Source: Trichosphaerium sp. ATCC 40318
Lineage: Eukaryota; Protista; Tubulinea
NCBI GenBank assembly: GCA_038496445.1
Contig: JALMLS010000064.1
Location: 774,758 to 838,757, forward strand
Length of the DNA stretch: 64,000 bases
Direction of reading: 5' to 3'
The position numbers and the translations under genes are program-made. This document shows positions 628 through 42,800 of this stretch, one piece after another (within the stretch, counting starts at the first letter, position 1; every line of letters begins with the position of its first letter). The notes beneath the pieces were generated by a model that did not search any database, was not told where the DNA came from, and saw nothing but the letters and a program-made list of their open reading frames with translations.

Positions 628-1276
628 TTTGTTGCTTGTACCTAAGAGGCACAGTAAATGGCTCTGAGGATGGCGTTGTACTTTCAGTTTTTAACCTGTA
701 ACCAAGTTTCCGAGGTCTTCTTGCTTTCTAAGTATGCCGCTTTAATGTCGGCGATATACAAGGCCTTTCGGGGCTGTATTTCGGGTTATAACAGCCGACG
801 AAAACAAATTCTTATTTTCATGACATGGAAAGCCAGTTCACATATTGTAGACGCAAGTACGCAAGTAGGTTTAAACAAAAAGAAACAAAAAGGACACGAA
901 GTTTGATTTACAAACAAAGTGGGTGGCTATCACGAAAGACCAAAACAAAACGTGACTGTTCCTAAATAAAGCGTAACATCATTGCTACTAGCGGGGCAAA
1001 CAAATACCACGACGTACGCTACTTCTTCAAAGCCATATAAAGGCCTCTAGAAGCTAGTTTAACCAAACGTTCACCTCAAACCCAACTAAGCAAACCATGT
1101 TATCTTTTGCCAAAACTAGTTCACTTCTCCACAACGAAGCAGGCTGTCGCATCCATTCTTGGTACCCAAATACGGTAGGATTAAAATGTGTACACTGATC
1201 CATGTCATACAAATCTCATAAAACATATCCCATCACCACCAAAGCAACACCTCATCAAAAGAGCCGGACTCTAAAA

Positions 1277-2424
1277 ATGAAAGCTGCAGTATCTGTATTT
1301 CTTCTTTGCATAGTCTTTTCTTTATTCACAGTTGTTTCAAGTCATGGCAGACTGACTTCTCCTCGAACACGTGATCAACAAGCTGACAGGCCTATTTACC
1401 AACAAGACGCACCAGTACAACTCCAAAACGGTCAATACACCTCAGCTCACAGATGTCGAAACCTTCCTTTTGTAGCCACAACAGAAACCTACAACGCCGG
1501 ACAAACTTACACAGTCACGTGGGCTTTCGCAGCCGCACATCCAGGAGACTGCTTCTTCTATCTTTCTTTCGATAATGAAGCGACATGGGCAAAGATAGAT
1601 CAAATCCGCGATTGTAATCTTATCGGAAGCTGGGACTTAACTATTCCTTCATGGGTACCTAGTGGTCAAGCTGTACTTCGATGGGAATGGTATTCACTTC
1701 AACAAGTTGTTAACGTTGAGTACTATCTTCAATGTGCCGATATAGTCATTGCAAACGGTAATAGTGGCCCTGTATCTTGGACACCTGTTGTTACAATACC
1801 TGGACATCTTCCTCTTGATGCTGGTCAATACAGAAAAGTATACGAACCAAACGCTCCTTTCTTCTACACAGGACCTGCTATAGCAACATTCACTGGATCT
1901 GTACCTCCTCCACCACCGACACAACCTTCTTCCACTCCTGCGCCTCCTCCACCTCCACCACCTCCACCAACAAATGCTCCACAAGCTCAATCAGCGTTTT
2001 GCCCTACTGTATCTGATGTATCGATAGCCAGTAAGTCCTTTTTTTTTCTTTGAGTTGTGCACTATCTAACAGAACGGCACTTAGATTATGGGTCAAGCAT
2101 GAACGTAAATGTTAAGCTTACTGCACCTTCTTCTGGCGCTCCTGTTACTTCAGTTCGCTTACGCCAATTATCACCTGCAGGCGCTGCTGCTACCAGTTGT
2201 TGGTCATCTACTGGGGCAGTAGTTGATGGAAGTACTACAGAATCTGGCACTAAAATTGTAAACGATTTCTAATTGTTACACTTGTGACTTATGTTCACCT
2301 TTAGATTACATTTTACCAACCTTGGGCTGCTGGCACAGAAAGAGCTGTTATAGGATGCAGTTGGGATAATGGAGATGATAATCTTGCTGTATCTGTAATT
2401 GAAGCAAACGGCAATGCATGTTAA
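1277..2424 (+). CDS. Secreted lytic polysaccharide monooxygenase (His-brace LPMO, family uncertain, AA11-like) with Pro linker and C-terminal CBM2-like module; 2 introns
   Basis: Signal peptide ending VVSS|HGRLTSPR gives a mature N-terminal His; second His in AAAHPGDCFFYLSFD; LRWEW...EYYLQCADI motif; poly-Pro linker; spliced C-terminus ends IEANGNAC*. Confidence 0.85.
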
Positions 2425-10109: not shown

Positions 10110-13100
10110 ATGTTTGCGAAAATAGGGTTTTGGGCTGTTCTTTCATTTCTAGTTGTATTATTCGTTCCACAAGCTGTACTTTGTCAAAGTGCATGTAGTC
10201 TGTACGACTTTGGCGGTTCAATAGATAAAATAGCTGCCATTGCTTTCGAAAGTGATGGCACTTATTGTGTGTACTCAAAAGTAGATTTTATTTTAGGTCC
10301 ATCGCTGAGTGCCGGGTACGTACAACTACAATATTCCGAAACTTCTTTTGTAGATGTTGATTTTATTACTAGCAACATAGCACAGAATGGCAGTTGTGCT
10401 TTCGCGGAAATTTTACACAATGCATACGAACCATATTCTATTGCATCTTGTGGTAAATTCTCTGCCATTCTCATGGACAACTTAACAATTGCAATCTACA
10501 AACGAGTCAATACTAGTCTTAATTTCCATACGAAATTAACAATTCAAGATGTACGCAAAAACTGTCAGTGTCATCTCTTTGATATCACTATTTCCCTTGC
10601 TTAATATTGCACTAGACGAAAGCTATGGGATTCTTTAATGGTATAATGAATGGTAAAAGTGGCATTCTAGTAGCTACAACAACACTAGGAATAATCCGTT
10701 ACTCAATAACAGAAACAAAGTTTCTTGCTACTTTTTATGATTTCATGCCGGAATGGATATTAAATCCACCAGGGAAACCTACCTCAGTTTTTTTTGATGG
10801 GCAATATTGTATTGTACAACCTTGACTTTTTTTTTTGATTTTAATCCTTTCCTCTAACATTACTGTAAAAGGTTACTTATAGTACCTCAGTTATAATACA
10901 AGGAAACAACGACATAGACCTTATAACAGCCAGTAATTTGGTTGGTGCTACTGTACTACCATCGTTTTCTAATGAGATATGGTTTATTATCGAGAGTGAA
11001 GGCTTACATATTGGGACTGATGATTGGGTTAATAGGAACCAAACTGTGGCTATTCTTCAATCAAATAGCTTATATAAACATAAATACAACCCTCGACAAT
11101 CTTACACGGTTGGTAATTGTGGTATATCCACTCATGATGATTGCTTGTTTTTGATTGCTAATGATACTGAAGAATCGGACTCATCTAGGTCAGTATACAG
11201 AGTGATGCCTTATCATAACTCTGTAGCTATTACACAACTTTCACCTACAGTATTTGCGCCAAAAGATCAATTTGTGATGGTTTTTGCTGTGCCTAATGAT
11301 ACGCTATTATTATATGACGAAAAACTTAATATTATCACGTGGGATTTAAACTTACCTAAGGGATTCATGTATAGAGATGGAGGTAAAATAGTACCTTGTC
11401 CAAAAGGGACGTATAAAAGCAATGATGGTCCTGGTATTTGCTTGCTTTGTAATCCTGGTACTTGGCAACCAAAAGAAGGATCAACATCATGCTTACCTTG
11501 TAAAAAAGAGCAAGCTTGCAGAGGCGGAACATTTGTCTATGAAATTCCACAAGTGTATCCGCTAAGTACCTCATTATTCTATCCCTTTCCAAAAACTTAT
11601 GTTGAGTCTTTACAAGAACAGTTTCTCTCTGCTATAACAACACCAAAGTCACCTGGGCTATTCACTTTCTTCATCATACTTTGTGTATTGGTAGTTTCTG
11701 TTGGCGTAACAGCTTCAATTCTTAAGTGTTGTGGCTGCGGCAGCAACATGTTAGTTGTTGTTGTTCGTGCTCTTGACACAAATCAACAAAGTAAATGGAG
11801 ACCAGATGGACCACCTACATGGCATGGCGATATCTTGGGAGGCTTGATAACAATAGCCATGATAGGGCTATGCATTTTAGTTTTGTATGCTGAGTCGCAA
11901 GTCTATTGTAGTTATCAACCATTACCTTTTAAATACGGTATTCAGCACCCATCCAAGCTAGCAAAGCGTACAAGATCTATAAGAAACGCTCAAGCTATAT
12001 TCGATTCTGATGATGTTAATATCTTTTATCAGTATCTGAAAGAGTACGAGATACAATTATCATGATGCTAAGTTAAGCTAAAATTAATATATTCATTTTT
12101 TTTAAGGTCTGTTCATTTAGATGTAACTGTCACGTGGTATTCTCTTCTGATATTTTACTAATTGCTATTGTTAATATGTATTCAGGCACAACTTATTTAG
12201 CTTTGACCCTGGATGTATTCCTAGAATCGTTAGGACAACTGCTACTCAGGAAATCATATCACAGAATTTAAATGTCACAACTGGAGCGTAAGATTGTTGG
12301 AGCCCTTTCCTTCACTTACCTATGGATAGATTCACTTACCGCACGTCTGTGGAATCATCCCAAAGTAGAATACAACTGCTAAATTGCGATGTGTTCTATA
12401 CCCATATTGACGTGCAATTTTACGCAATCCAAAAGCATGGTACACTACAACTATTTCAACTTCTTGACATTAGCAATGTTACACAACTACTTGTTAACTC
12501 ATTTCCAAAACCCAATGTGTTGTAGAACAGATTCAAGCAAGCAGCTTCGTTGAATCTTTTAGCATGAGCTACATGACAACTTACCCTGACTAACTTGTTT
12601 AATAGCAACTGTAGCTACAATTCATTTTGTAGAAAATAGCGGATCATATATGCCAAAGTTAGATCATAAAATTGTAGCTACAGCTACAGGTGTTGTACGA
12701 ACAACAACAACTACATATGGTAGTAAACAAACAGATGGTATGTTTGTCGCTGTATTTTCAAAAAAAACATACTTTTAACATTTCGTTGCTAAGGTTACAT
12801 TGGTCTAACTGCAGAGGTATCTCCCAACAACAATCAACCTTTGAGTTCAAATGTTGCAACAATACTGAATTATATGGTTCTAGCCAACACTCAAGGTAAG
12901 TACAGTCAGTGCTGCACATAAGTGATATTGCATTTTCCAAGAAAACCTGTTAAGTTCTTTTGAAAAACCAACTCATTTGCGTACCCCAGTATTTGATTAG
13001 ATGTGTGGTTGACTAACATGTGGGTTTTTTTTGTAGTTTATTCATTGATATGCATGTTGATGCAAATCTTTTTCGTGAGATTGAAGAACCATACTTTACG

Positions 13101-19764: not shown

Positions 19765-21793
19765 TTATTTTCTAGCATTATTGGCACCACCAATATATCT
19801 ATGTAGCATAAATGCACCAACAACAGCAACAGCAGCTCCACTAAGAAGTCCTAAAGCAGCCAAAGGTGAAAGTTGATCTTCTTCTGCTTCTTCTTCAATA
19901 GCGATAGCCTAAACGAAGATAAGAATATTGATTAAGGTTTTGAATAACAAAACTCCTTTTTACCAGCGGATTCTCATAAAAACATGAAAAAAAAAAAAAG
20001 AGAAAAAAGAAGATTTTTCTTTTTGAGTTTCTGGTTTTTTGCCGCCGTTAAATTTGACGTCGCATAGATGCCTTGCGTGAGAGAGAGGTACTCTCCTTTT
20101 TTCTATTTTGTTCATCTATAAATTCAAGCTCATTTATCCTTTCCTCAAGTATGATAGCCTGAAACAAATTAAACATATATAACATCGGTAATAACAATAA
20201 AAGTCAGCAAGCAACCTACCTCTGGTTCTGTAGCTGGAGTTCTCTTTAGTGATCTTAGATACTCACGTGCTTGTTTTAAATCTTTTGGGACAACTTTGCC
20301 TTCAATAAACATGCGACATAACTGGTTACATATTAATCAAACCAAAGAACACTCTTCAAAAAAAAGAAAGAAAATAACTTGTACGTACACGTAAGCAAGC
20401 TTCAGAACAATTTAGGTCTTTCGCCTTTATCCATAATTTCTGTGCAGTAGGATACTCACCACGCTTAAAAGCAACAAGTCCAAGATGATAGAATGCAATT
20501 GGTACACCTGAAGTCGATTAGCAAACAACAAAAACTCAAGTACAGAAGCACAACTTTTTTACCAAAAAGAAAAAAGCGAACACGTGCTAAACATCATCTC
20601 CTACGCACCTTGCTTTGCAGCTTTACTGTACCACTCTTCTGAAATAAACAAGTCCTGTTCAATTCCTGCAGTACCATTAAAGTACACATGACCAATCATC
20701 AACTGAGCCTCTGGATCATTCCATTGTTTATTAGCCATTCTAGGTGTTTTATTAAAAACAAGAACAGAAAAAAACGAAACGTCAAAAAACCCACAATCTT
20801 TTCTTTTAACGTTGACATAAGGAATGACTCTGGCGAGAGGTGGAATGACGTACTTCAAAAAATCAAGTGCTTTCGTTGCGTCTGTTTTTAATATATCTAA
20901 AAACTTTTTATCCAAGCCCAGGTATACCCTGGCTGCACCTTTTTGAGCCTAAACATGTTAACAAATGATAAAATAAAAGTGATTATTTTTTTCTTTATCT
21001 TCTCAAAGAATTGATAAAATCCTGTTTCTGACGGCAACAAAAACAAGCCATATATAACTACAGTCATAATATAACTTGTCAAAAGAGCGTAGAACACCAG
21101 GTAGAAGAAATAAAACGACAACAAGATAGAAAAAAAGTGGTGAGAAAGCAAAAACAACACGTACCAGCAATAACCCTTTCTTTGCTGCAGCAAGCATATT
21201 ACGAAATCCTTCGCGTAGATCAACCTCAAAATGGCGCCCATGTATTTTAGCTTGAGCAAACTCATATTGAGATTGACCATCAATGTCTTCTCCTTTCAAT
21301 ACTGGACCCTTTAAATAAGATGATTTTGTCAGTATTGAGAGACTGGATGATGAATACGTTTTTTTGTAAACCGATAGACTGATTTTGGCTGAAAAGGCAA
21401 CTTTTATCCGTTTTGTTGTCATTTACCTTTACTAGCATTGGCCATGGCGTTTTACGCTTCTTTTCAAGATCAATAGATACTTTACCATCAGAAAGAAACC
21501 ATAAGCTATGCATTACTGGCTCAAATAGCGTTCCCTATACCCAATCAGTACATTATTTTATAAAACGCCATGTTTCCGCGGCTTTTTTTTTCTGTACGAG
21601 TTCCTAATGCGTTACGCGTAGAAATAATACATACTTGTACAATTGGGGTTTGTCCTTTAATCCCAGCACAAATTTGATCATTCTTTATTATAATAGCAAT
21701 GTCTTTCTTGCTTTTATTCGGTGGTATATAGAACGAAACGCATGCTTCATCATGGTGATCACTCCATTCATAAAAAGTACCAAAACGCGACAT
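19765..21793 (-). CDS. CS (p23/NudC-like) domain plus Sel1-like repeat protein, probably tail-anchored
   Basis: YEWSD...IKNDQICAGIKGQTPIVQGTLFEPV...LW...LEK...WPMLV is CS-like; Sel1 repeats DPEAQLMIGHVYFNG..WYSKAAKQG and AFYHLG; terminal TM exon 19765-19908; 3' splicing ambiguous. Confidence 0.75.
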
Positions 21794-22215
21794 TCGCTCG
21801 TGTGACGTTTAATGCGCGTAAATCAAAACGAAATAGTGAATTTAGGCTCTTTGTAAGCCAAGTCAACCCATTTCATTTTCCAAAAACTTTCGTGCAGCCA
21901 AAACGAGCATGTTCCGTTGTGAGATGGCTATTGCTAGTAACAACTGATGAATTATACTTTTGAGGCTTAACGACTGTTTTGGTACTGAACTCAACTTTAT
22001 AAATCAACAAAGAAAAACGTTTCACTGAGTTAACAAAAAAGAAAAGTTTTTATTTTACCAACAAATACAAAAGCGAAATATAACATCGCTGTTAACCCAA
22101 TGTAATGACTTTACTTTTGTTTGTCAGCTTCTACAAGAAGAAAATAAGGTAAGAGAAGGAAGAAAACATTGCAAACTCAAAACTTCAAAAAAAAATTGAA
22201 CTCATTTGAACAAAG

Positions 22216-23925
22216 TCAAGTGACAGCTGTTAACGTACTTGGATCATAGTCTTCATCCAAGAATCTAGTCAAAGACTCGGCGGTGGCTACTTTAGCATCA
22301 CCTTTGAGCACTTTACCGATTGGCAAGAAACGCCATTGACCATCATTTTCAGGATCTCTGAATACCTTGCAGAAGCACAATCCACGGACTTTACCGAGCT
22401 TCTCATTGATGACGTAACGACATTTTTCATCTTGAGTCAAGTCATCGCACAAACGGACGTAAGCTTGTGGAACATCTTTGAAAGATTTGCTGCCTTTTAA
22501 AAAAATATGAGTATAAACAAAAGGAAAAAAACTGTTGATCAGAGTGGTGCAAGAAACATCGAACTTGTCTTTCTAATAAGAGTATCGTACCTGTGTAGAC
22601 ATGGATAACGAACACGAGGTTCTTGACGGATGCTTTAAGGCTGTTCAAGTTGACAGTGATACGTTCTTGGTCACCTTCCTTGTTTGAGCTTCTTGCATTG
22701 GTAATATCGCCACTGTGTTCGATATCAAATTTCTTGCTCTTTAGTTGCTTGAAGGAAATTGTTTCGATCAATTTATCCTTCTTATCAAAGAGAACAAGTG
22801 ATGCATCCAAGTCAAAGTCGGTACTCCAACCAAGGCCCTAATAATGATAAACAACAACTCGAACAAGTACGGAAAAAAAAAGCGAAATGTTGAACGAAAG
22901 CTACTGGGCACTGAATGACACGTACAACGAATACTTTGGCCATGTGACGTTCAACCCAGTTGAATACTTCACCACGAGCAAGCATTTGGGAGGATTCTCT
23001 TTTCAAAGTCTACAAGGAGCGTCAGCAAAAAAAATTATACGAAAGACTTTTGTTGACATTTGAAGTTAGTCGTTGAAGAAAAACTTACTGGCTTCTTCTT
23101 TGTTGTGCGAGCCTTCTTCTTTGGTGTAGTCTTGGTAGGACTGGCCTTGCGCTTCTTAGGGCTAGCTCTCTTGGTGGCCTTTTTAGGAGTGGTTTTTTTA
23201 GTGGCAGCCTTGCGTCCTCTTTTCTTAGGAGCAGGCTTACTACCAGTAGTTTTCTTGGCTCTAGTGGTCTTCTTTGTTGTCTTCTTGGTAGTCTTCTTAG
23301 TGGTCTTTTTCGTAGTGCGCCTGTGAACGTATAAGACAAAGCACAAAGGCGACAAAAAGGCGAAACGTATTTTTGAAGATTTGCCACTTACTTTTTGGTT
23401 GTCTTTTTAACGCTAGATACACGAATACGGTACGAAGCACGTTTCTGGATGAGCAAGTTCTTCTCTACACCGCTAGAAATAGGTTAGTTCGCAGAAAAAA
23501 TGCAATGTACGAACCCGGCAAGAGCATTTCTTACATAGCGTCTGTAGGTGCTAGGATTGACATCAAAGTTCTGTTCTACGTACTTTGCAATCGCAATGTA
23601 ACTGATAAACTACGAAAATAGTATTAGATTTGTTACTTCTGAGCAAACACAAAACAGCTCATAGCCAGTAAAAAACCGTTACATGTACTTGTAGAAAATA
23701 GGAAAAGAAAGTCGATGAAAGAGAAAAAAAGTGTTCTACGAACGATCTCTTCTGATTTTTCGCAAAATAAGTCCATTGATCATGCACTGTTGTTGTACTA
23801 ACCTTACGAACGTTACCAGCAGCAATATCTTCGATGGCGAGGGCAACCATCACGGAATAAGGCTTCTTAGTGGCTGTAGCCACTTTTTTTTTCTTTGTAC
23901 TCTTTGTTGATTTTCTGGCAGGCAT
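22216..23925 (-). CDS. Linker histone H1 (H15 globular domain plus basic tail) fused to a C-terminal TerD domain
   Basis: KKPYSVMVALAI...SYIAIAKYVEQNF...RYVRNAL..GVEKNLLIQKRASYRI fits H15; K/T/A/P tail with SPKK/TPKK; phase-0 intron 23010-23088 joins to VFVGLGW..DLDAS..HSGD..GDQERITVNL..LVFVIHVY..SFKDVPQAYVRL..WRFLPIG (TerD). Confidence 0.82.
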
Positions 23926-24457
23926 CTTTGAGTTCTTTTGAGTACGCGATGCGGTTGAGGTGGTAGGTTTATTTAAAAATTAAGGTCACATGTTACCGTT
24001 AAGCCAAAAGTAACCGTTGGTTTGGCGGCATTTACTTAATACAAGAGTGTTTATAACTTGTTCATTCAATAATTATTTAATTTTGTTTGGTTGTGTTTTT
24101 GATATTTTTTTTTTTGATAATTTTCTTGTGTTGTGGTGTATCTCCTTGTCTATTTACCTTCTCGTTTAAATATACGAACGTGTCAGGTTATATTCTCGGG
24201 TTTGTTAGGCGGATTAGATACTTATACTACCGTTAATGGCGTAAATCACATAACAGCAAAAAGCGACTTTTTTTTGTTCATAAGAACAAACCCCTGACCG
24301 CTGCTTATACATCCATTTGATAACCCTCGGTATCTCGCGTTATATCGCATACTAGTACAGTGTACTATCCTACGATAACACGCTTAAAATGGTCGCATTT
24401 GTGATGAATTTCCGAAGCCATAATATCTTTAGAGCGTTCTGACTTTGTTACGGGAGC

Positions 24458-34768: not shown

Positions 34769-35377
34769 TCGTACGGGAAAACTGAAAAAAGGCCTGGTAG
34801 CGTTGTGTTAAGAGTTTCCCCACTTTTTTCGCAAGTGTTACGCGTATGAACAACGATGTGATAACCTCTTGATGTAGATGGGCGATTTGCTAACAATCAC
34901 GTGATTTAAATTGGTTGACTGCTATGCGTTCTTTCAGGCGGTAATGTCACTCTACCTCGTTTTCCGAGTTACAATCCTTGCTAGAGTTTAACTCAATCAA
35001 GCCTAGGGAACCTTACACAATTCCAGTGATTGTGCAAAGGGTTCGAATAGATTTAATCAATGGTACTGAACGCAATCAAGGCGACAATGCCATACGCGGT
35101 AGGACCGTAGCTTTACTCGGGACAAGAACCACATTCGCTTACAAAGTCAACCGCACGTGGCAAAAAATTCGAACAGAGATTCGAACAAACGCCAGAATAC
35201 ACCCGACCGTCATAATGCATTCCCATGATTTAAAAGAACTGTAATACCTCAGTGCTTGATAGGTAAACGGCTTACTTAAAAATACCGTTCAAGTTGAACA
35301 TCGTTCACATAAAAATACCGTTCACTTCGTTCGAAACGGCATTCAAACCAGCTCTACAACCAACAAAACAGCATCGA

Positions 35378-35887
35378 ATGCAAGTTAAATACACACTTGG
35401 TCCTTCTACGATAACAGAAGCTGGTAGAGGTATTTTTGCTGCTGAATTCATTCCAAAGGGCACTCTCGTGTGGAAATGGCGTCAAATAGACCACGTGATA
35501 TTTAGCGATGCTGAGCAGATGAATGACTTTCTAACTAACAAGCCAGACGAAGAAATACGAAGTATTCTGGAGCATACGTATGGTTTTCATGGGTTTGTGA
35601 TGTACGAGCTAGATGCTCATAAATATACAAACCATCACGCTACAGAATACAATGTTGGCCATAATCACGACCTCCCTCACGATGAGAAACTGTGGAAAAT
35701 ATTCGCATTGAAAGATATACAAGAGGGAGATGAATTTTTCGAAAATTATGCACGTGAGCTAGAAAAAAGCGGTCCTTCTTGGTGGCAGAAGCTTGTTGAC
35801 AAATATCGCGTTCCTTTTTTCGACGGGGATCTTCCCGTCGAGTTCAGGGCAGATGCTTCGCCGGCTACAGTAAAGTCAGTGTCGTAA
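35378..35887 (+). CDS. Intronless small SET-domain protein (bacterial-type architecture)
   Basis: S.I.EAGRGIFAAEFIPKGTLVW, KYTNHH, FALKDIQEGDEFFENY; no pre-SET or post-SET Cys domains. Confidence 0.85.
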   Translation: MQVKYTLGPSTITEAGRGIFAAEFIPKGTLVWKWRQIDHVIFSDAEQMNDFLTNKPDEEIRSILEHTYGFHGFVMYELDAHKYTNHHATEYNVGHNHDLPHDEKLWKIFALKDIQEGDEFFENYARELEKSGPSWWQKLVDKYRVPFFDGDLPVEFRADASPATVKSVS

Positions 35888-39848: not shown

Positions 39849-42800
39849 TCACCGTGAGTCCCTATCATTATCAAAATTTGGTCTATCTCTATTTTTTCTT
39901 TTCTGTTTGTATGCTTTTCTTTCCATAAACTTTTGAAGTTTTCCTGTCTTGCTCAGTCTCTTGAATTTGGATTTCAACATTTCCTCATTAATCTGCCTAT
40001 CTGATAATACAAATGGCTTTTGTCCTCTCTCAACCCTCTCAAGTTGCTCTTTCTTATGTCTAGATATTATCTCTGATTTTTCTACCTTATCCAATCGCTT
40101 TTGTTTCTTTTGTCGCTAAAGAAGAAACATGGTAAATACAAAGAAACACGTAACAATTGTTGGGTTTTAATTTGGAAAAAAACTGAAAAAAAACAAAAAA
40201 ACGCTCTTCTTACCAGTGTGTTAATAGCACTCTGTAATTTTGCTCTATCTTCATCACTATGTCTTTTACGTTTCAATTCCTTAACTAATCCATTCAATTC
40301 CTTTTCTTCCATTTCAGCAATGAACTTATACTGCTCTCTAAAGGAAACAATGAGAAACGCAAAAAAAACCAACCAAACTATCACAAAAAACATACCCTAC
40401 GAACGGACTGACGTGTTTTCTTGATACAACATCAAACCTAGGATCACGGCCACGTTCTTTTCTTATACGCTGGAGTGGTGCTGGCTTTACCTTACTAGAT
40501 ATCTCAGCTGGTTGGTCACCTGTTTTTTTATGACCACGTTTCTGTCTAATCTCGTATGCTCTTTCTCTTGCATCGTGTCTCTTTATACCAAACAGAGACT
40601 TACGTTGTGTTGCATCTTTTTGTTGCTTTAAAATATCACCAAATGAAGTACTTGCAAGTCCAGCATCCTATTAAAGAAAAAAAATTAATCACGTGGCTAA
40701 CAAAAGAGTAAACAAAAAAAGAAAATAAACGTACTTCCAAAACAGAATTAAAGCCTTCTTTTTTATCTTCATCCATAGGCTCTACACCATCGTCCTGAAC
40801 TCTTCTCTAAATAGCATAGTCAATATTTAAACCAACAGATGGCACAGTCATACACGTTTTACAGGACGCTCAATTCTCTGGCGTTGTACTGGCATTTGCG
40901 TAGGTAATCGTCGTTTAGTACCCTTTGCTGTTTTAACACTTCTAAAAAAGATGTCAGTTTCGGACTTTCTGCACTCTTTTTGTTTGCTACTCACCGTTTC
41001 TTTAAGCTCCACATGCCCCAATCAGACTCACTTGAGTCATCGGAGTCTTTACTATTATCATCATCTGAGGAACCATCTTCATCAGAAGAGGACGAAGATG
41101 AATCACTAGATTCTGATTTTTTAGGGTTTAAGCCGAATAAGTCAGCAGATGTTACACCTGATGCTTTTGTAGACATTTGCATAGGTGCACCAGAATCAGA
41201 CGAAGACTCTTCACTCTCTTCAATAGGCATACGATCTAGATTTGAGTTAAAACAAACAAAAGAAGAGCAAGAAAAAAGCCAGAAATGCTTACCTGCAGAT
41301 GGTTTACCCGTTTTTATCAAAGCTGGACCAGAATCGTCCTCGCTATCACTTGCTTCAATTGTCTTTTGTGTCATTGCACGTTCTGCTAACATACGTCTTC
41401 TATTTTGTGAACCATTTCTTTGTTCGTTTTTAGATGACTGCATTGCTGGAGCACCATCAGAGTCACTTGAACTCTCGCTGATTTCACGCCTTGAAGAAGT
41501 TACTTTCTTAGGTTGTGTTTGTTGTCTCCCTGAACGTCTTGTACTCTGACTTTCCCTGTTCTTGCTTGATTGTATAGTAGGAGCTCCTGAAGATGAACTG
41601 TCACTTTCAGAAGAGTCTATAGGTTTAGATTTAACACTACGCATAGCAGTAATGTTTCTAGACATTGATCTGTCATTAGTTGATCTGGCAGGCTTTTTAT
41701 CAGAAGATCTGCTTGTTTTAGAGCTCATTGCTACTGGTGGTCCAGAGGAAGACGAAGAGTCGCTATCAAAAGTCTTAGGTGCTGGTTTAACTCTTTTAAC
41801 TGGAGTAGAAGAGCGTCTTGTTTCGTGTTTTGTAGGACGCTTTGTCGAAGCCGTTTCAGGTGGACCAGAATCACTGTCACTATCGCTTTGCATTGCTTGT
41901 TCACGCACTGGTTTCCGTTGAGTTTGTGTACGTTTTTGTGGTATTGGTGGGTTTGTTGGTTCTTTTTCAACAGGTGGAGGAGCAAATTGCCTACTTGGCT
42001 TAAATTTTGAAGCATCAAACTCTTCATCTGATGAAGAAGAAAATTCATCATTTACGCTTGTTGATTTCTTTGGTTTTTTTTGATTCTGTTGCTTCCTTGA
42101 TGAACTCGAAACAGGTCGTTTCATTGTTTGTTTAGTTTGTGGTTTCTGATCTTCGTCAGAATCGTCAGAAGATGAATCATCTGGGAAAGAAGCTTCTTTG
42201 AATACTTTTCCTTTTGGTGATCCTTTAACAATTCTAGATGTTCCTGAAGTGTTCGTAGATGCACGCTGAGGTGTCTTTCTTGTTGCTTGAACTACTGGCT
42301 CTTCATCAGAGTCATCTGAATCATCAGGAAATGATGCCTCTTTAAAGTGTTTCCCTTTTGATACTTGGCCATTGTTTTGTCTCTGAACAGGACGTGATCG
42401 TTGTTGAGTACGTTGTGGGGGTTGTTTAAATTTTTGTTGTGTTGGCTGGTCTTCAGAAGAATCATCTGAATCATCCGGAAATGAAGCCTCTTTGAATCTC
42501 TTGCCTTGTGGTGGATCTCTGTCTCTACGCATTGGCTGTGTTTGGCGACGCACTGGAGGCTCTTGTCTTGAGGTTCTTCTAGTACTTGTTTGTTGCATTG
42601 GAGCAGAGTCAGAGTCATCTGAGTCATCCGGAAATGATGCCTCTTTGAAACGTTTTCCACGCTCTTCTCTATTATTACCACGGCTGTTGTTGCGTCTATC
42701 ATCGCTATATCTATCGTGTTCCATTCGCTTAGGAGATGGTTCACGCATAGGACCTGGTTCAGGAGGAGGTTGCTCTTTGTAGCCGCGAGGAGCGCCCCAT

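Follow-up and report, generated by a model that had tools for sequence, protein, structure and literature searches.

We analysed a 64,000-nt stretch of the genome of Trichosphaerium sp. ATCC 40318, a protist of the Tubulinea (assembly GCA_038496445.1, contig JALMLS010000064.1, positions 774,758 to 838,757 of the forward strand). This whole stretch is called "the window", and all positions refer to it. The window contains a gene on the minus strand that encodes, in one frame, a basic N-tail of 21 residues, an H15 winged-helix domain, a Lys/Thr-rich tail of 82 residues, and a complete TerD domain, i.e. a linker histone H1 fused to a domain of bacterial type. The coding sequence of this gene, referred to as H1-TerD, comprises positions 23925..22111, with eight exons and 378 codons; the predicted protein has a mass of 42.8 kDa, an isoelectric point (pI) of 10.3, and the C-terminus ...EDYDPKADKQK. 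It is an intron-rich nuclear gene with an mRNA of ~1.25 kb of the polyadenylation type. The parts of the transcript are as follows:

23926..23974, minus strand: 5′-untranslated region (5′-UTR), a 49-nt leader without ATG; probable cap site at 23974
23925-23803, minus strand: exon 1, with the ATG, the basic N-tail (residues 1-21) and the first helix of H15; joint 23803|23609 found in three sequencing runs
23610-23802, minus strand: intron 1, 193 nt, GT..AG
23609-23515, minus strand: exon 2, part of H15
23473-23514, minus strand: intron 2, 42 nt, GT..AG
23472-23392, minus strand: exon 3, end of H15 and start of the Lys/Thr-rich tail
23321-23391, minus strand: intron 3, 71 nt, GT..AG
23320-23089, minus strand: exon 4, Lys/Thr-rich tail
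23010-23088, minus strand: intron 4, 79 nt, GTAAGT..TAG, phase 0, containing ACTAAC; exactly at the boundary between tail and TerD
23009-22926, minus strand: exon 5, start of TerD
22838-22925, minus strand: intron 5, 88 nt, GT..AG, inside the TerD part
22837-22591, minus strand: exon 6, TerD
22494-22590, minus strand: intron 6, 97 nt, GT..AG, inside the TerD part
22493-22239, minus strand: exon 7, TerD
22131-22238, minus strand: intron 7, 108 nt, GT..AG, inside the TerD part
22130 onward (22130-22111), minus strand: exon 8, C-terminus, with the stop codon TAA at 22113-22111
22049..22110, minus strand: 3′-UTR, with AATAAA at 22054-22049, 57 nt past the stop codon; transcript contigs extend beyond 22100

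To establish this structure, seven exons were joined in a first model at GT-AG borders, and exons 2, 5, and 7 were then mended from transcript contigs. The ACTAAC motif is present in two of the seven introns. The original prediction, made from the letters of the window, had proposed one spliced frame from H1 into TerD, and its main elements were borne out: the single spliced frame, the phase-0 GT-AG intron 4, the basic N-tail, the H15 domain and the Lys-rich tail with its S/T-P-K-K sites, and a complete TerD domain with GLGW, DLDAS, HSGD, GDQERI, and WRF. The tail is indeed Lys-rich and carries sites of the cyclin-dependent kinase (CDK) type, and its length is 82 residues rather than the ~75 that had been given. 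The gene model itself had to be revised to the eight minus-strand exons of the transcripts. A stop codon had been placed at 22216-22218, which is inside the seventh intron and is removed in the transcripts, and the gene extends ~105 nt past the lower coordinate of 22216. Exon 5 was also drawn too short; its end is at 22926, so that GLGW is preceded by three additional residues, Val-Phe-Val.

A search listed 20 sequencing runs (12 studies) that contain the searched stretch or a part of it, and four of the runs were aligned to the locus. In 11 of the 20 runs, 36-46% of the sampled words of this stretch are present, about as expected from exons alone. Three runs from three studies and with three organism labels (X1, X4, and X5) yielded one contig each, of 1129-1254 nt, which contains every exon and from which all seven introns have been removed. 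The joint that connects the two halves, 23089|23009 (79 nt skipped, CT..AC; 85 letters on the shorter side), is present within single contigs of all three runs, and joining the exons in silico at the transcript junctions results in a single open frame. Splicing of exon 4 to exon 5 requires one pre-mRNA across both halves, and the joint is therefore direct evidence for a fused message. Intron 4, with which the frame would stop at 23035, is covered by none of the contigs aligned at the locus. Neither of the outcomes that had been named as contrary to a fusion, i.e. transcripts that end in the intron or an N-terminal domain without H15 similarity, was found. The X1 contig terminates at 23974 and is followed by loose letters, which we take to be the 3′ GGG end of a template-switch oligo; the capped 5′ end is thus probably at 23974, and the fused message probably begins upstream of the H1 ATG.

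Additional interpretations of the locus were considered and discarded. A wrong joining of two neighbouring genes is excluded by the spliced junction, and bacterial contamination as the source of TerD is excluded by the three spliced introns within this domain. What looked like two inserted letters in the contigs, at 23473/23518, and was considered as an alternative junction, is in reality a synonymous C>T difference beside the 42-nt intron.

At the protein level, the gene is divided into the following parts:

23439..23865, minus strand: H15/GH1 winged-helix domain, residues 21-84, spread over exons 1-3
23089..23405, minus strand: Lys/Thr-rich tail of the C-terminal type, residues 96-177, pI 12, with TTKK repeats; end of exon 3 and exon 4
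22111..23009, minus strand: TerD domain and C-terminal extension, residues 178-378, exons 5-8

The tripartite layout of linker histones, i.e. a basic N-tail (pI 11.5), a globular domain, and a Lys-rich tail, is present. When exons 1-3 were joined (77 residues), they matched the Pfam profile PF00538 (Linker_histone) with 42.4 bits and an E-value of 8.2e-11, at a cut-off of 22.4 bits; exon 2 alone reached 18.9 bits. In a single-sequence search, the best relatives of the H15 domain in the PDB were the globular domains of yeast Hho1p (1UHM and 1UST), with a weak E-value of 0.1, and a phmmer search of the PDB with exon 2 alone gave no match. The tail is composed of 39% Lys and 29% Thr (31 and 23 of 80 residues, respectively) and contains four S/TPxK sites of the CDK type (TPKK at residue 144, SPKK at 153, SPTK at 160, and TPKK at 165). 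In the runs X3 and X5, short contigs match the part of the tail that encodes TTKK (23269-23304) with three mismatches and then continue into other Lys-rich coding sequence; further genes with K/T-rich tails of this kind are probable in the organism.

Canonical H1/H5 proteins (PF00538) share with H1-TerD the short basic N-tail, the H15 domain, and the long Lys-rich tail with S/TPxK sites. In contrast to canonical H1, which ends with the basic tail, the frame continues via the spliced intron 4, and ~200 residues of TerD are added. Further differences are that the abundant residue of the tail, besides Lys, is Thr (TTKK repeats) instead of Ala or Pro, and that the mRNA is formed from a gene with seven introns and has an AATAAA signal, whereas neither a histone 3′ stem-loop nor any other Rfam family, nor a tRNA, was found in the window. 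Fusions of H15 are not without parallel, i.e. plant HMGA-type proteins combine H15 with AT-hooks, and telomere-binding proteins combine Myb with H15. In these proteins, H15 likewise serves as a DNA- or nucleosome-binding module beside other domains. However, its partners are DNA-binding modules, whereas in H1-TerD it is joined to a beta-sandwich that does not bind DNA and comes from a metal/ligand-binding family.

The TerD part is identified by the profile PF02342 (cut-off 25.3 bits). Exon 6 matches profile positions 26-112 (47.1 bits, E 2.4e-12), and exon 7 matches positions 119-179 (35.5 bits, E 8.8e-9); with these matches, both profile checks that had been proposed for the two halves were positive. 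A local hidden Markov model (HMM) envelope comprises residues 181-378. Exons 6 and 7 align collinearly with solved TerD structures (3IBZ, E 3e-9; 2KXT, E 6e-5 and 5e-4), while searches of NCBIfam and the ESM Atlas gave nothing informative. The motifs GLGW, DFDLDAS, HSGD, GDQERI, AYVRL, CKVFR, and WRF are retained, and the domain is followed by a short conserved C-terminal extension, RFLDEDYDP....

Like the bacterial TerD, TerE, and TerZ proteins (PF02342; 2KXT and 3IBZ), H1-TerD matches the TerD profile over its full length, and it has GLGW, DLDAS, HSGD, GD.E..I, AYVRL, and W.F..IG in common with them. In contrast to the bacterial genes, H1-TerD is a spliced eukaryotic gene and is not part of a ter operon, its downstream neighbour on the same strand being an open reading frame (ORF) with a CS domain. 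Bacterial TerD is encoded alongside vWA (TerY) proteins. In comparison with the aligned bacterial proteins, H1-TerD lacks the insertion after GLGW, its second acidic loop is altered, and it has a C-terminal extension that is absent from the bacterial proteins and common to a eukaryote-type clade (see below). The Ca2+-binding loops of TerD are reportedly bipartite and acidic (Pan and colleagues, 2011), formed by a DxD cluster and a GDN.TG.G.GDDE loop. The first of these clusters, DFDLDAS, is intact in H1-TerD.

Ca2+ is bound by TerD of Klebsiella, a TerD protein of Streptomyces has a role in Ca2+ homeostasis, and the TerD proteins of Dictyostelium were found as proteins that bind cyclic AMP (cAMP) (as summarised in PMC8123226). 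The Dictyostelium genes are among the candidates for bacterial transfers (PMC3188802). Dictyostelium CABP1 (capA/capB) is also a TerD protein of a eukaryotic amoeba, but, unlike H1-TerD, it has no histone part. CABP1 reportedly enters the nucleus during Dictyostelium development.

The differences between the window and the transcript contigs were used to estimate selection on the frame. There are five coding differences (22363, 22742, 23125, 23565, and 23517, the last of them beside the 42-nt intron), and all five are synonymous third-position changes; H15 and TerD have two each, and the tail has one. By a rough estimate, about one in four random coding changes would be synonymous, which suggests purifying selection on the frame as a whole, albeit on a small sample (n=5).

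The window does not contain a further copy of H1 or TerD. In addition to H1-TerD, the following ORFs were observed:

21545-21793, minus strand: exon with a CS domain (p23/NudC-type co-chaperone), the downstream neighbour of H1-TerD on the same strand, beginning ~250 nt after its AATAAA; 20.8 bits, just below the Pfam cut-off
1202-2053, plus strand: ORF of 283 residues with a match (E 5.8e-12) to Pfam AA9, the lytic polysaccharide monooxygenases once classified as GH61, which occur mostly in fungi
35294-35887, plus strand: ORF with a SET domain, E 6e-9
10938-12065, plus strand: ORF with an ephrin-receptor-like/TNFR cysteine-rich repeat
40991-42748, minus strand: uninterrupted ORF of 585 residues, no Pfam family at E <= 0.001

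To identify relatives, 1.84 billion representative proteins were searched with exon 6 (HMMER, E <= 0.001), which resulted in 436 hits. Neither H1-TerD itself nor an orthologue is among these hits. The best single-domain match, P0003, is 54% identical and has a different N-terminus; in a search of metagenome contigs, the relatives had identities of only 33-34%. A local phmmer search of all 158 fetched proteins with the H15 part revealed no H15 domain in any of them. Word-indexed searches (alignment dominated by H2A words; TerD region of P0061, 135 candidates scored) were uninformative on the absence of other H1-TerD proteins. As far as the searches reach, H1-TerD appears to be unique to this genome. 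The presence of TerD on a histone is not unique, and the relatives include histone fusions of another type. The architectures were the following:

P0026, P0155, P0156: histone H2A fold, C-terminal docking part of H2A, Lys-rich linker, and TerD, in ORFs of 365-375 residues
P0022, P0027, P0045, P0083: EF-hand pair, long linker, and C-terminal TerD
P0061, P0039, P0158: Lys-rich or SPKK-type N-terminus and TerD
P0003, P0057: another shared N-terminal domain and TerD

The H2A-TerD proteins are encoded on contigs of ~1.25 kb (loci L003-L008) from at least six environmental samples (five JGI, one Logan), and no description of such a protein was found. P0039 and P0158 were considered as truncated H1 fusions, which is excluded by in-frame stops upstream in both contigs. 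The N-terminal domain shared by P0003 and P0057 is unnamed in Pfam and has the consensus ...GRIVIDCGFTK.YD...TAGTERYV.NAAVW.LNLE.

A tree of 51 TerD domains was calculated with IQ-TREE; its bootstrap had not fully settled, and the support values are therefore rough. The TerD of the window falls inside a clade of 21 rows (support 96/95) that includes the H2A-TerD proteins (P0026, P0155, P0156), the EF-hand proteins (P0022, P0027, P0045, P0083), and the Lys-rich proteins P0061 and P0158. Its sister is P0060 (support 98/92), a protein of 1015 residues from a marine culture-type transcriptome record. In the alignment, the clade is characterised by GLGW without a following insertion, by a loop HSGD[I/H/V] that replaces HSGDN-TG-G-GDDE, and by the extension ...[KR][YF][IL].EDY.P. 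TerD is always C-terminal in this clade, is joined to varied N-terminal modules, and has been found on eukaryote-type transcripts so far. The TerD of the window agrees with the clade in its C-terminal position, its motifs, and its grouping in the tree. The EF-hand partners suggest a Ca2+ theme for the clade, and the H2A partners point to chromatin as one of its recurrent addresses.

Taken as a whole, the results are best explained if H1-TerD is a Ca2+- or ligand-responsive chromatin protein, a reading to which we assign a probability of roughly 0.55. As in an ordinary H1, the H1 half would direct the protein to the linker DNA of nucleosomes, and the S/TPxK sites would enable cell-cycle kinases to loosen it. 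TerD would be held on chromatin at the end of the basic tail as a module for the binding of Ca2+ or a small ligand, and the loaded domain would either alter the contacts of the adjacent basic tail with DNA or recruit a partner. The outcome would be that Ca2+ or stress signalling is tied to local chromatin compaction, and H1-TerD would correspond, among linker histones, to macroH2A, with TerD taking the position of the macro domain. The intact DFDLDAS cluster and the four clade members with EF-hands favour Ca2+ as the signal.

Several observations weigh against such a role. The PF00538 match comprises profile positions 2-63 of 74, and the last 11 positions, which represent the wing of the winged helix, are unmatched. 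No second species with H15 and TerD was found in the searches made, and the conservation of the fusion itself is therefore unproven. The second acidic loop, which in bacteria reads HSGDN-TG-G-GDDE, is HSGD-ITNARSSNKE-GDQE in H1-TerD, i.e. residues including Arg and Lys are inserted, and the Asn and one Asp are missing, while GD, E, and D.E are kept. Due to this altered loop, the binding of Ca2+ may be weakened or lost. In addition, TerD is net basic in this protein, with a pI of 8.6 as compared with a clade median of 5.7, unlike most TerD domains. The changed loop and the basic charge are also compatible with a less probable alternative, in which H15 and the basic tail serve only as a nuclear or DNA address, and TerD no longer binds metal but mediates protein-protein or membrane contacts, e.g. 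by holding a partner to chromatin via the ...EDY.P extension. This extension is present throughout the clade and missing from the aligned bacterial proteins, and the same TerD clade occurs on unrelated N-terminal modules, as would be expected of a portable interaction domain. In contrast, the retention of DFDLDAS together with a part of the second cluster argues for metal binding, and the EF-hand members of the clade fit a Ca2+ context.

The assembled contigs also set a limit, because they drop rare variants and cannot rank isoforms, so that minor forms with only H1 or only TerD may exist. That such forms are the two main products and the fusion is the minor one, i.e. that retention of intron 4, with the stop at 23035, gives a plain H1 and/or a start at Met186 in exon 5 gives a free TerD, is unlikely. 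The position of intron 4 exactly at the domain boundary would be in accordance with this possibility, since its retention yields a normal-looking H1 end, and there is an in-frame Met nine codons into exon 5. However, only fully spliced contigs were found at the locus in the three runs, the 79-nt gap is too short for a terminator and a promoter, and the 5′ end of the contig is upstream of the H1 ATG. Even less probable is a young and neutral accident of exon shuffling, which would be transcribed without the fusion having a selected function. The failure to find an orthologous protein elsewhere in the searches is compatible with a recent origin, but the exclusively synonymous differences in both halves, the intact frame across eight exons, the expression in three studies, and the independent H2A-TerD fusion elsewhere all argue against a neutral accident. 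A Ca2+- or ligand-responsive chromatin protein is thus the reading that we prefer.

The proposed role invites a comparison with macroH2A. Both proteins consist of a histone, a basic linker, and, at the C-terminus, a globular domain whose family is known for the binding of small ligands. They differ in that H1-TerD contains a linker histone instead of a core histone and TerD instead of a macro domain, and that it has no known ligand, so that the likeness is in the layout only. The analogy to macroH2A that had been drawn in the original prediction therefore holds for the layout, and it gains from the H2A-TerD fusions in the same TerD clade, but it does not extend to the type of histone or of domain. 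A literal TerD analogue of macroH2A is H2A-TerD (P0026), with H2A, a Lys-rich linker, and TerD. Full-text literature searches revealed no publication that describes a histone-TerD or H1-TerD protein, in agreement with the earlier remark that no described H1-TerD fusion was known, although the main comparative paper on the Ter system (Anantharaman/Iyer/Aravind 2012) could still mention one. Judged from its domains, H1-TerD would belong to a known kind of protein, i.e. histone variants with an appended globular domain, and the combination of H1 and TerD appears to be new.

Histones with a globular sensor domain are rare, and macroH2A is the textbook case, which has influenced the thinking about the routes by which metabolites reach chromatin. 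H1-TerD and H2A-TerD together suggest that a bacterial-type stress/Ca2+ module was put on nucleosomes more than once. It is conceivable, though doubtful at present, that the histone-TerD fusions, i.e. H1-TerD here and H2A-TerD in uncultured eukaryotes from soil and water, represent an unrecognised class of signal-sensing histone variants of protists, in which a Ca2+/nucleotide-binding TerD on the nucleosome would turn Ca2+ or stress signals into changes in compaction. Even if TerD has no sensing function, the gene is a clean example of domain accretion onto a histone at a phase-0 intron. Should the domain have kept the ability to bind Ca2+ or a nucleotide, H1-TerD would be a direct link from second messengers to linker-histone function, and it would provide an entry point to eukaryotic TerD proteins, whose biology has hardly been studied.

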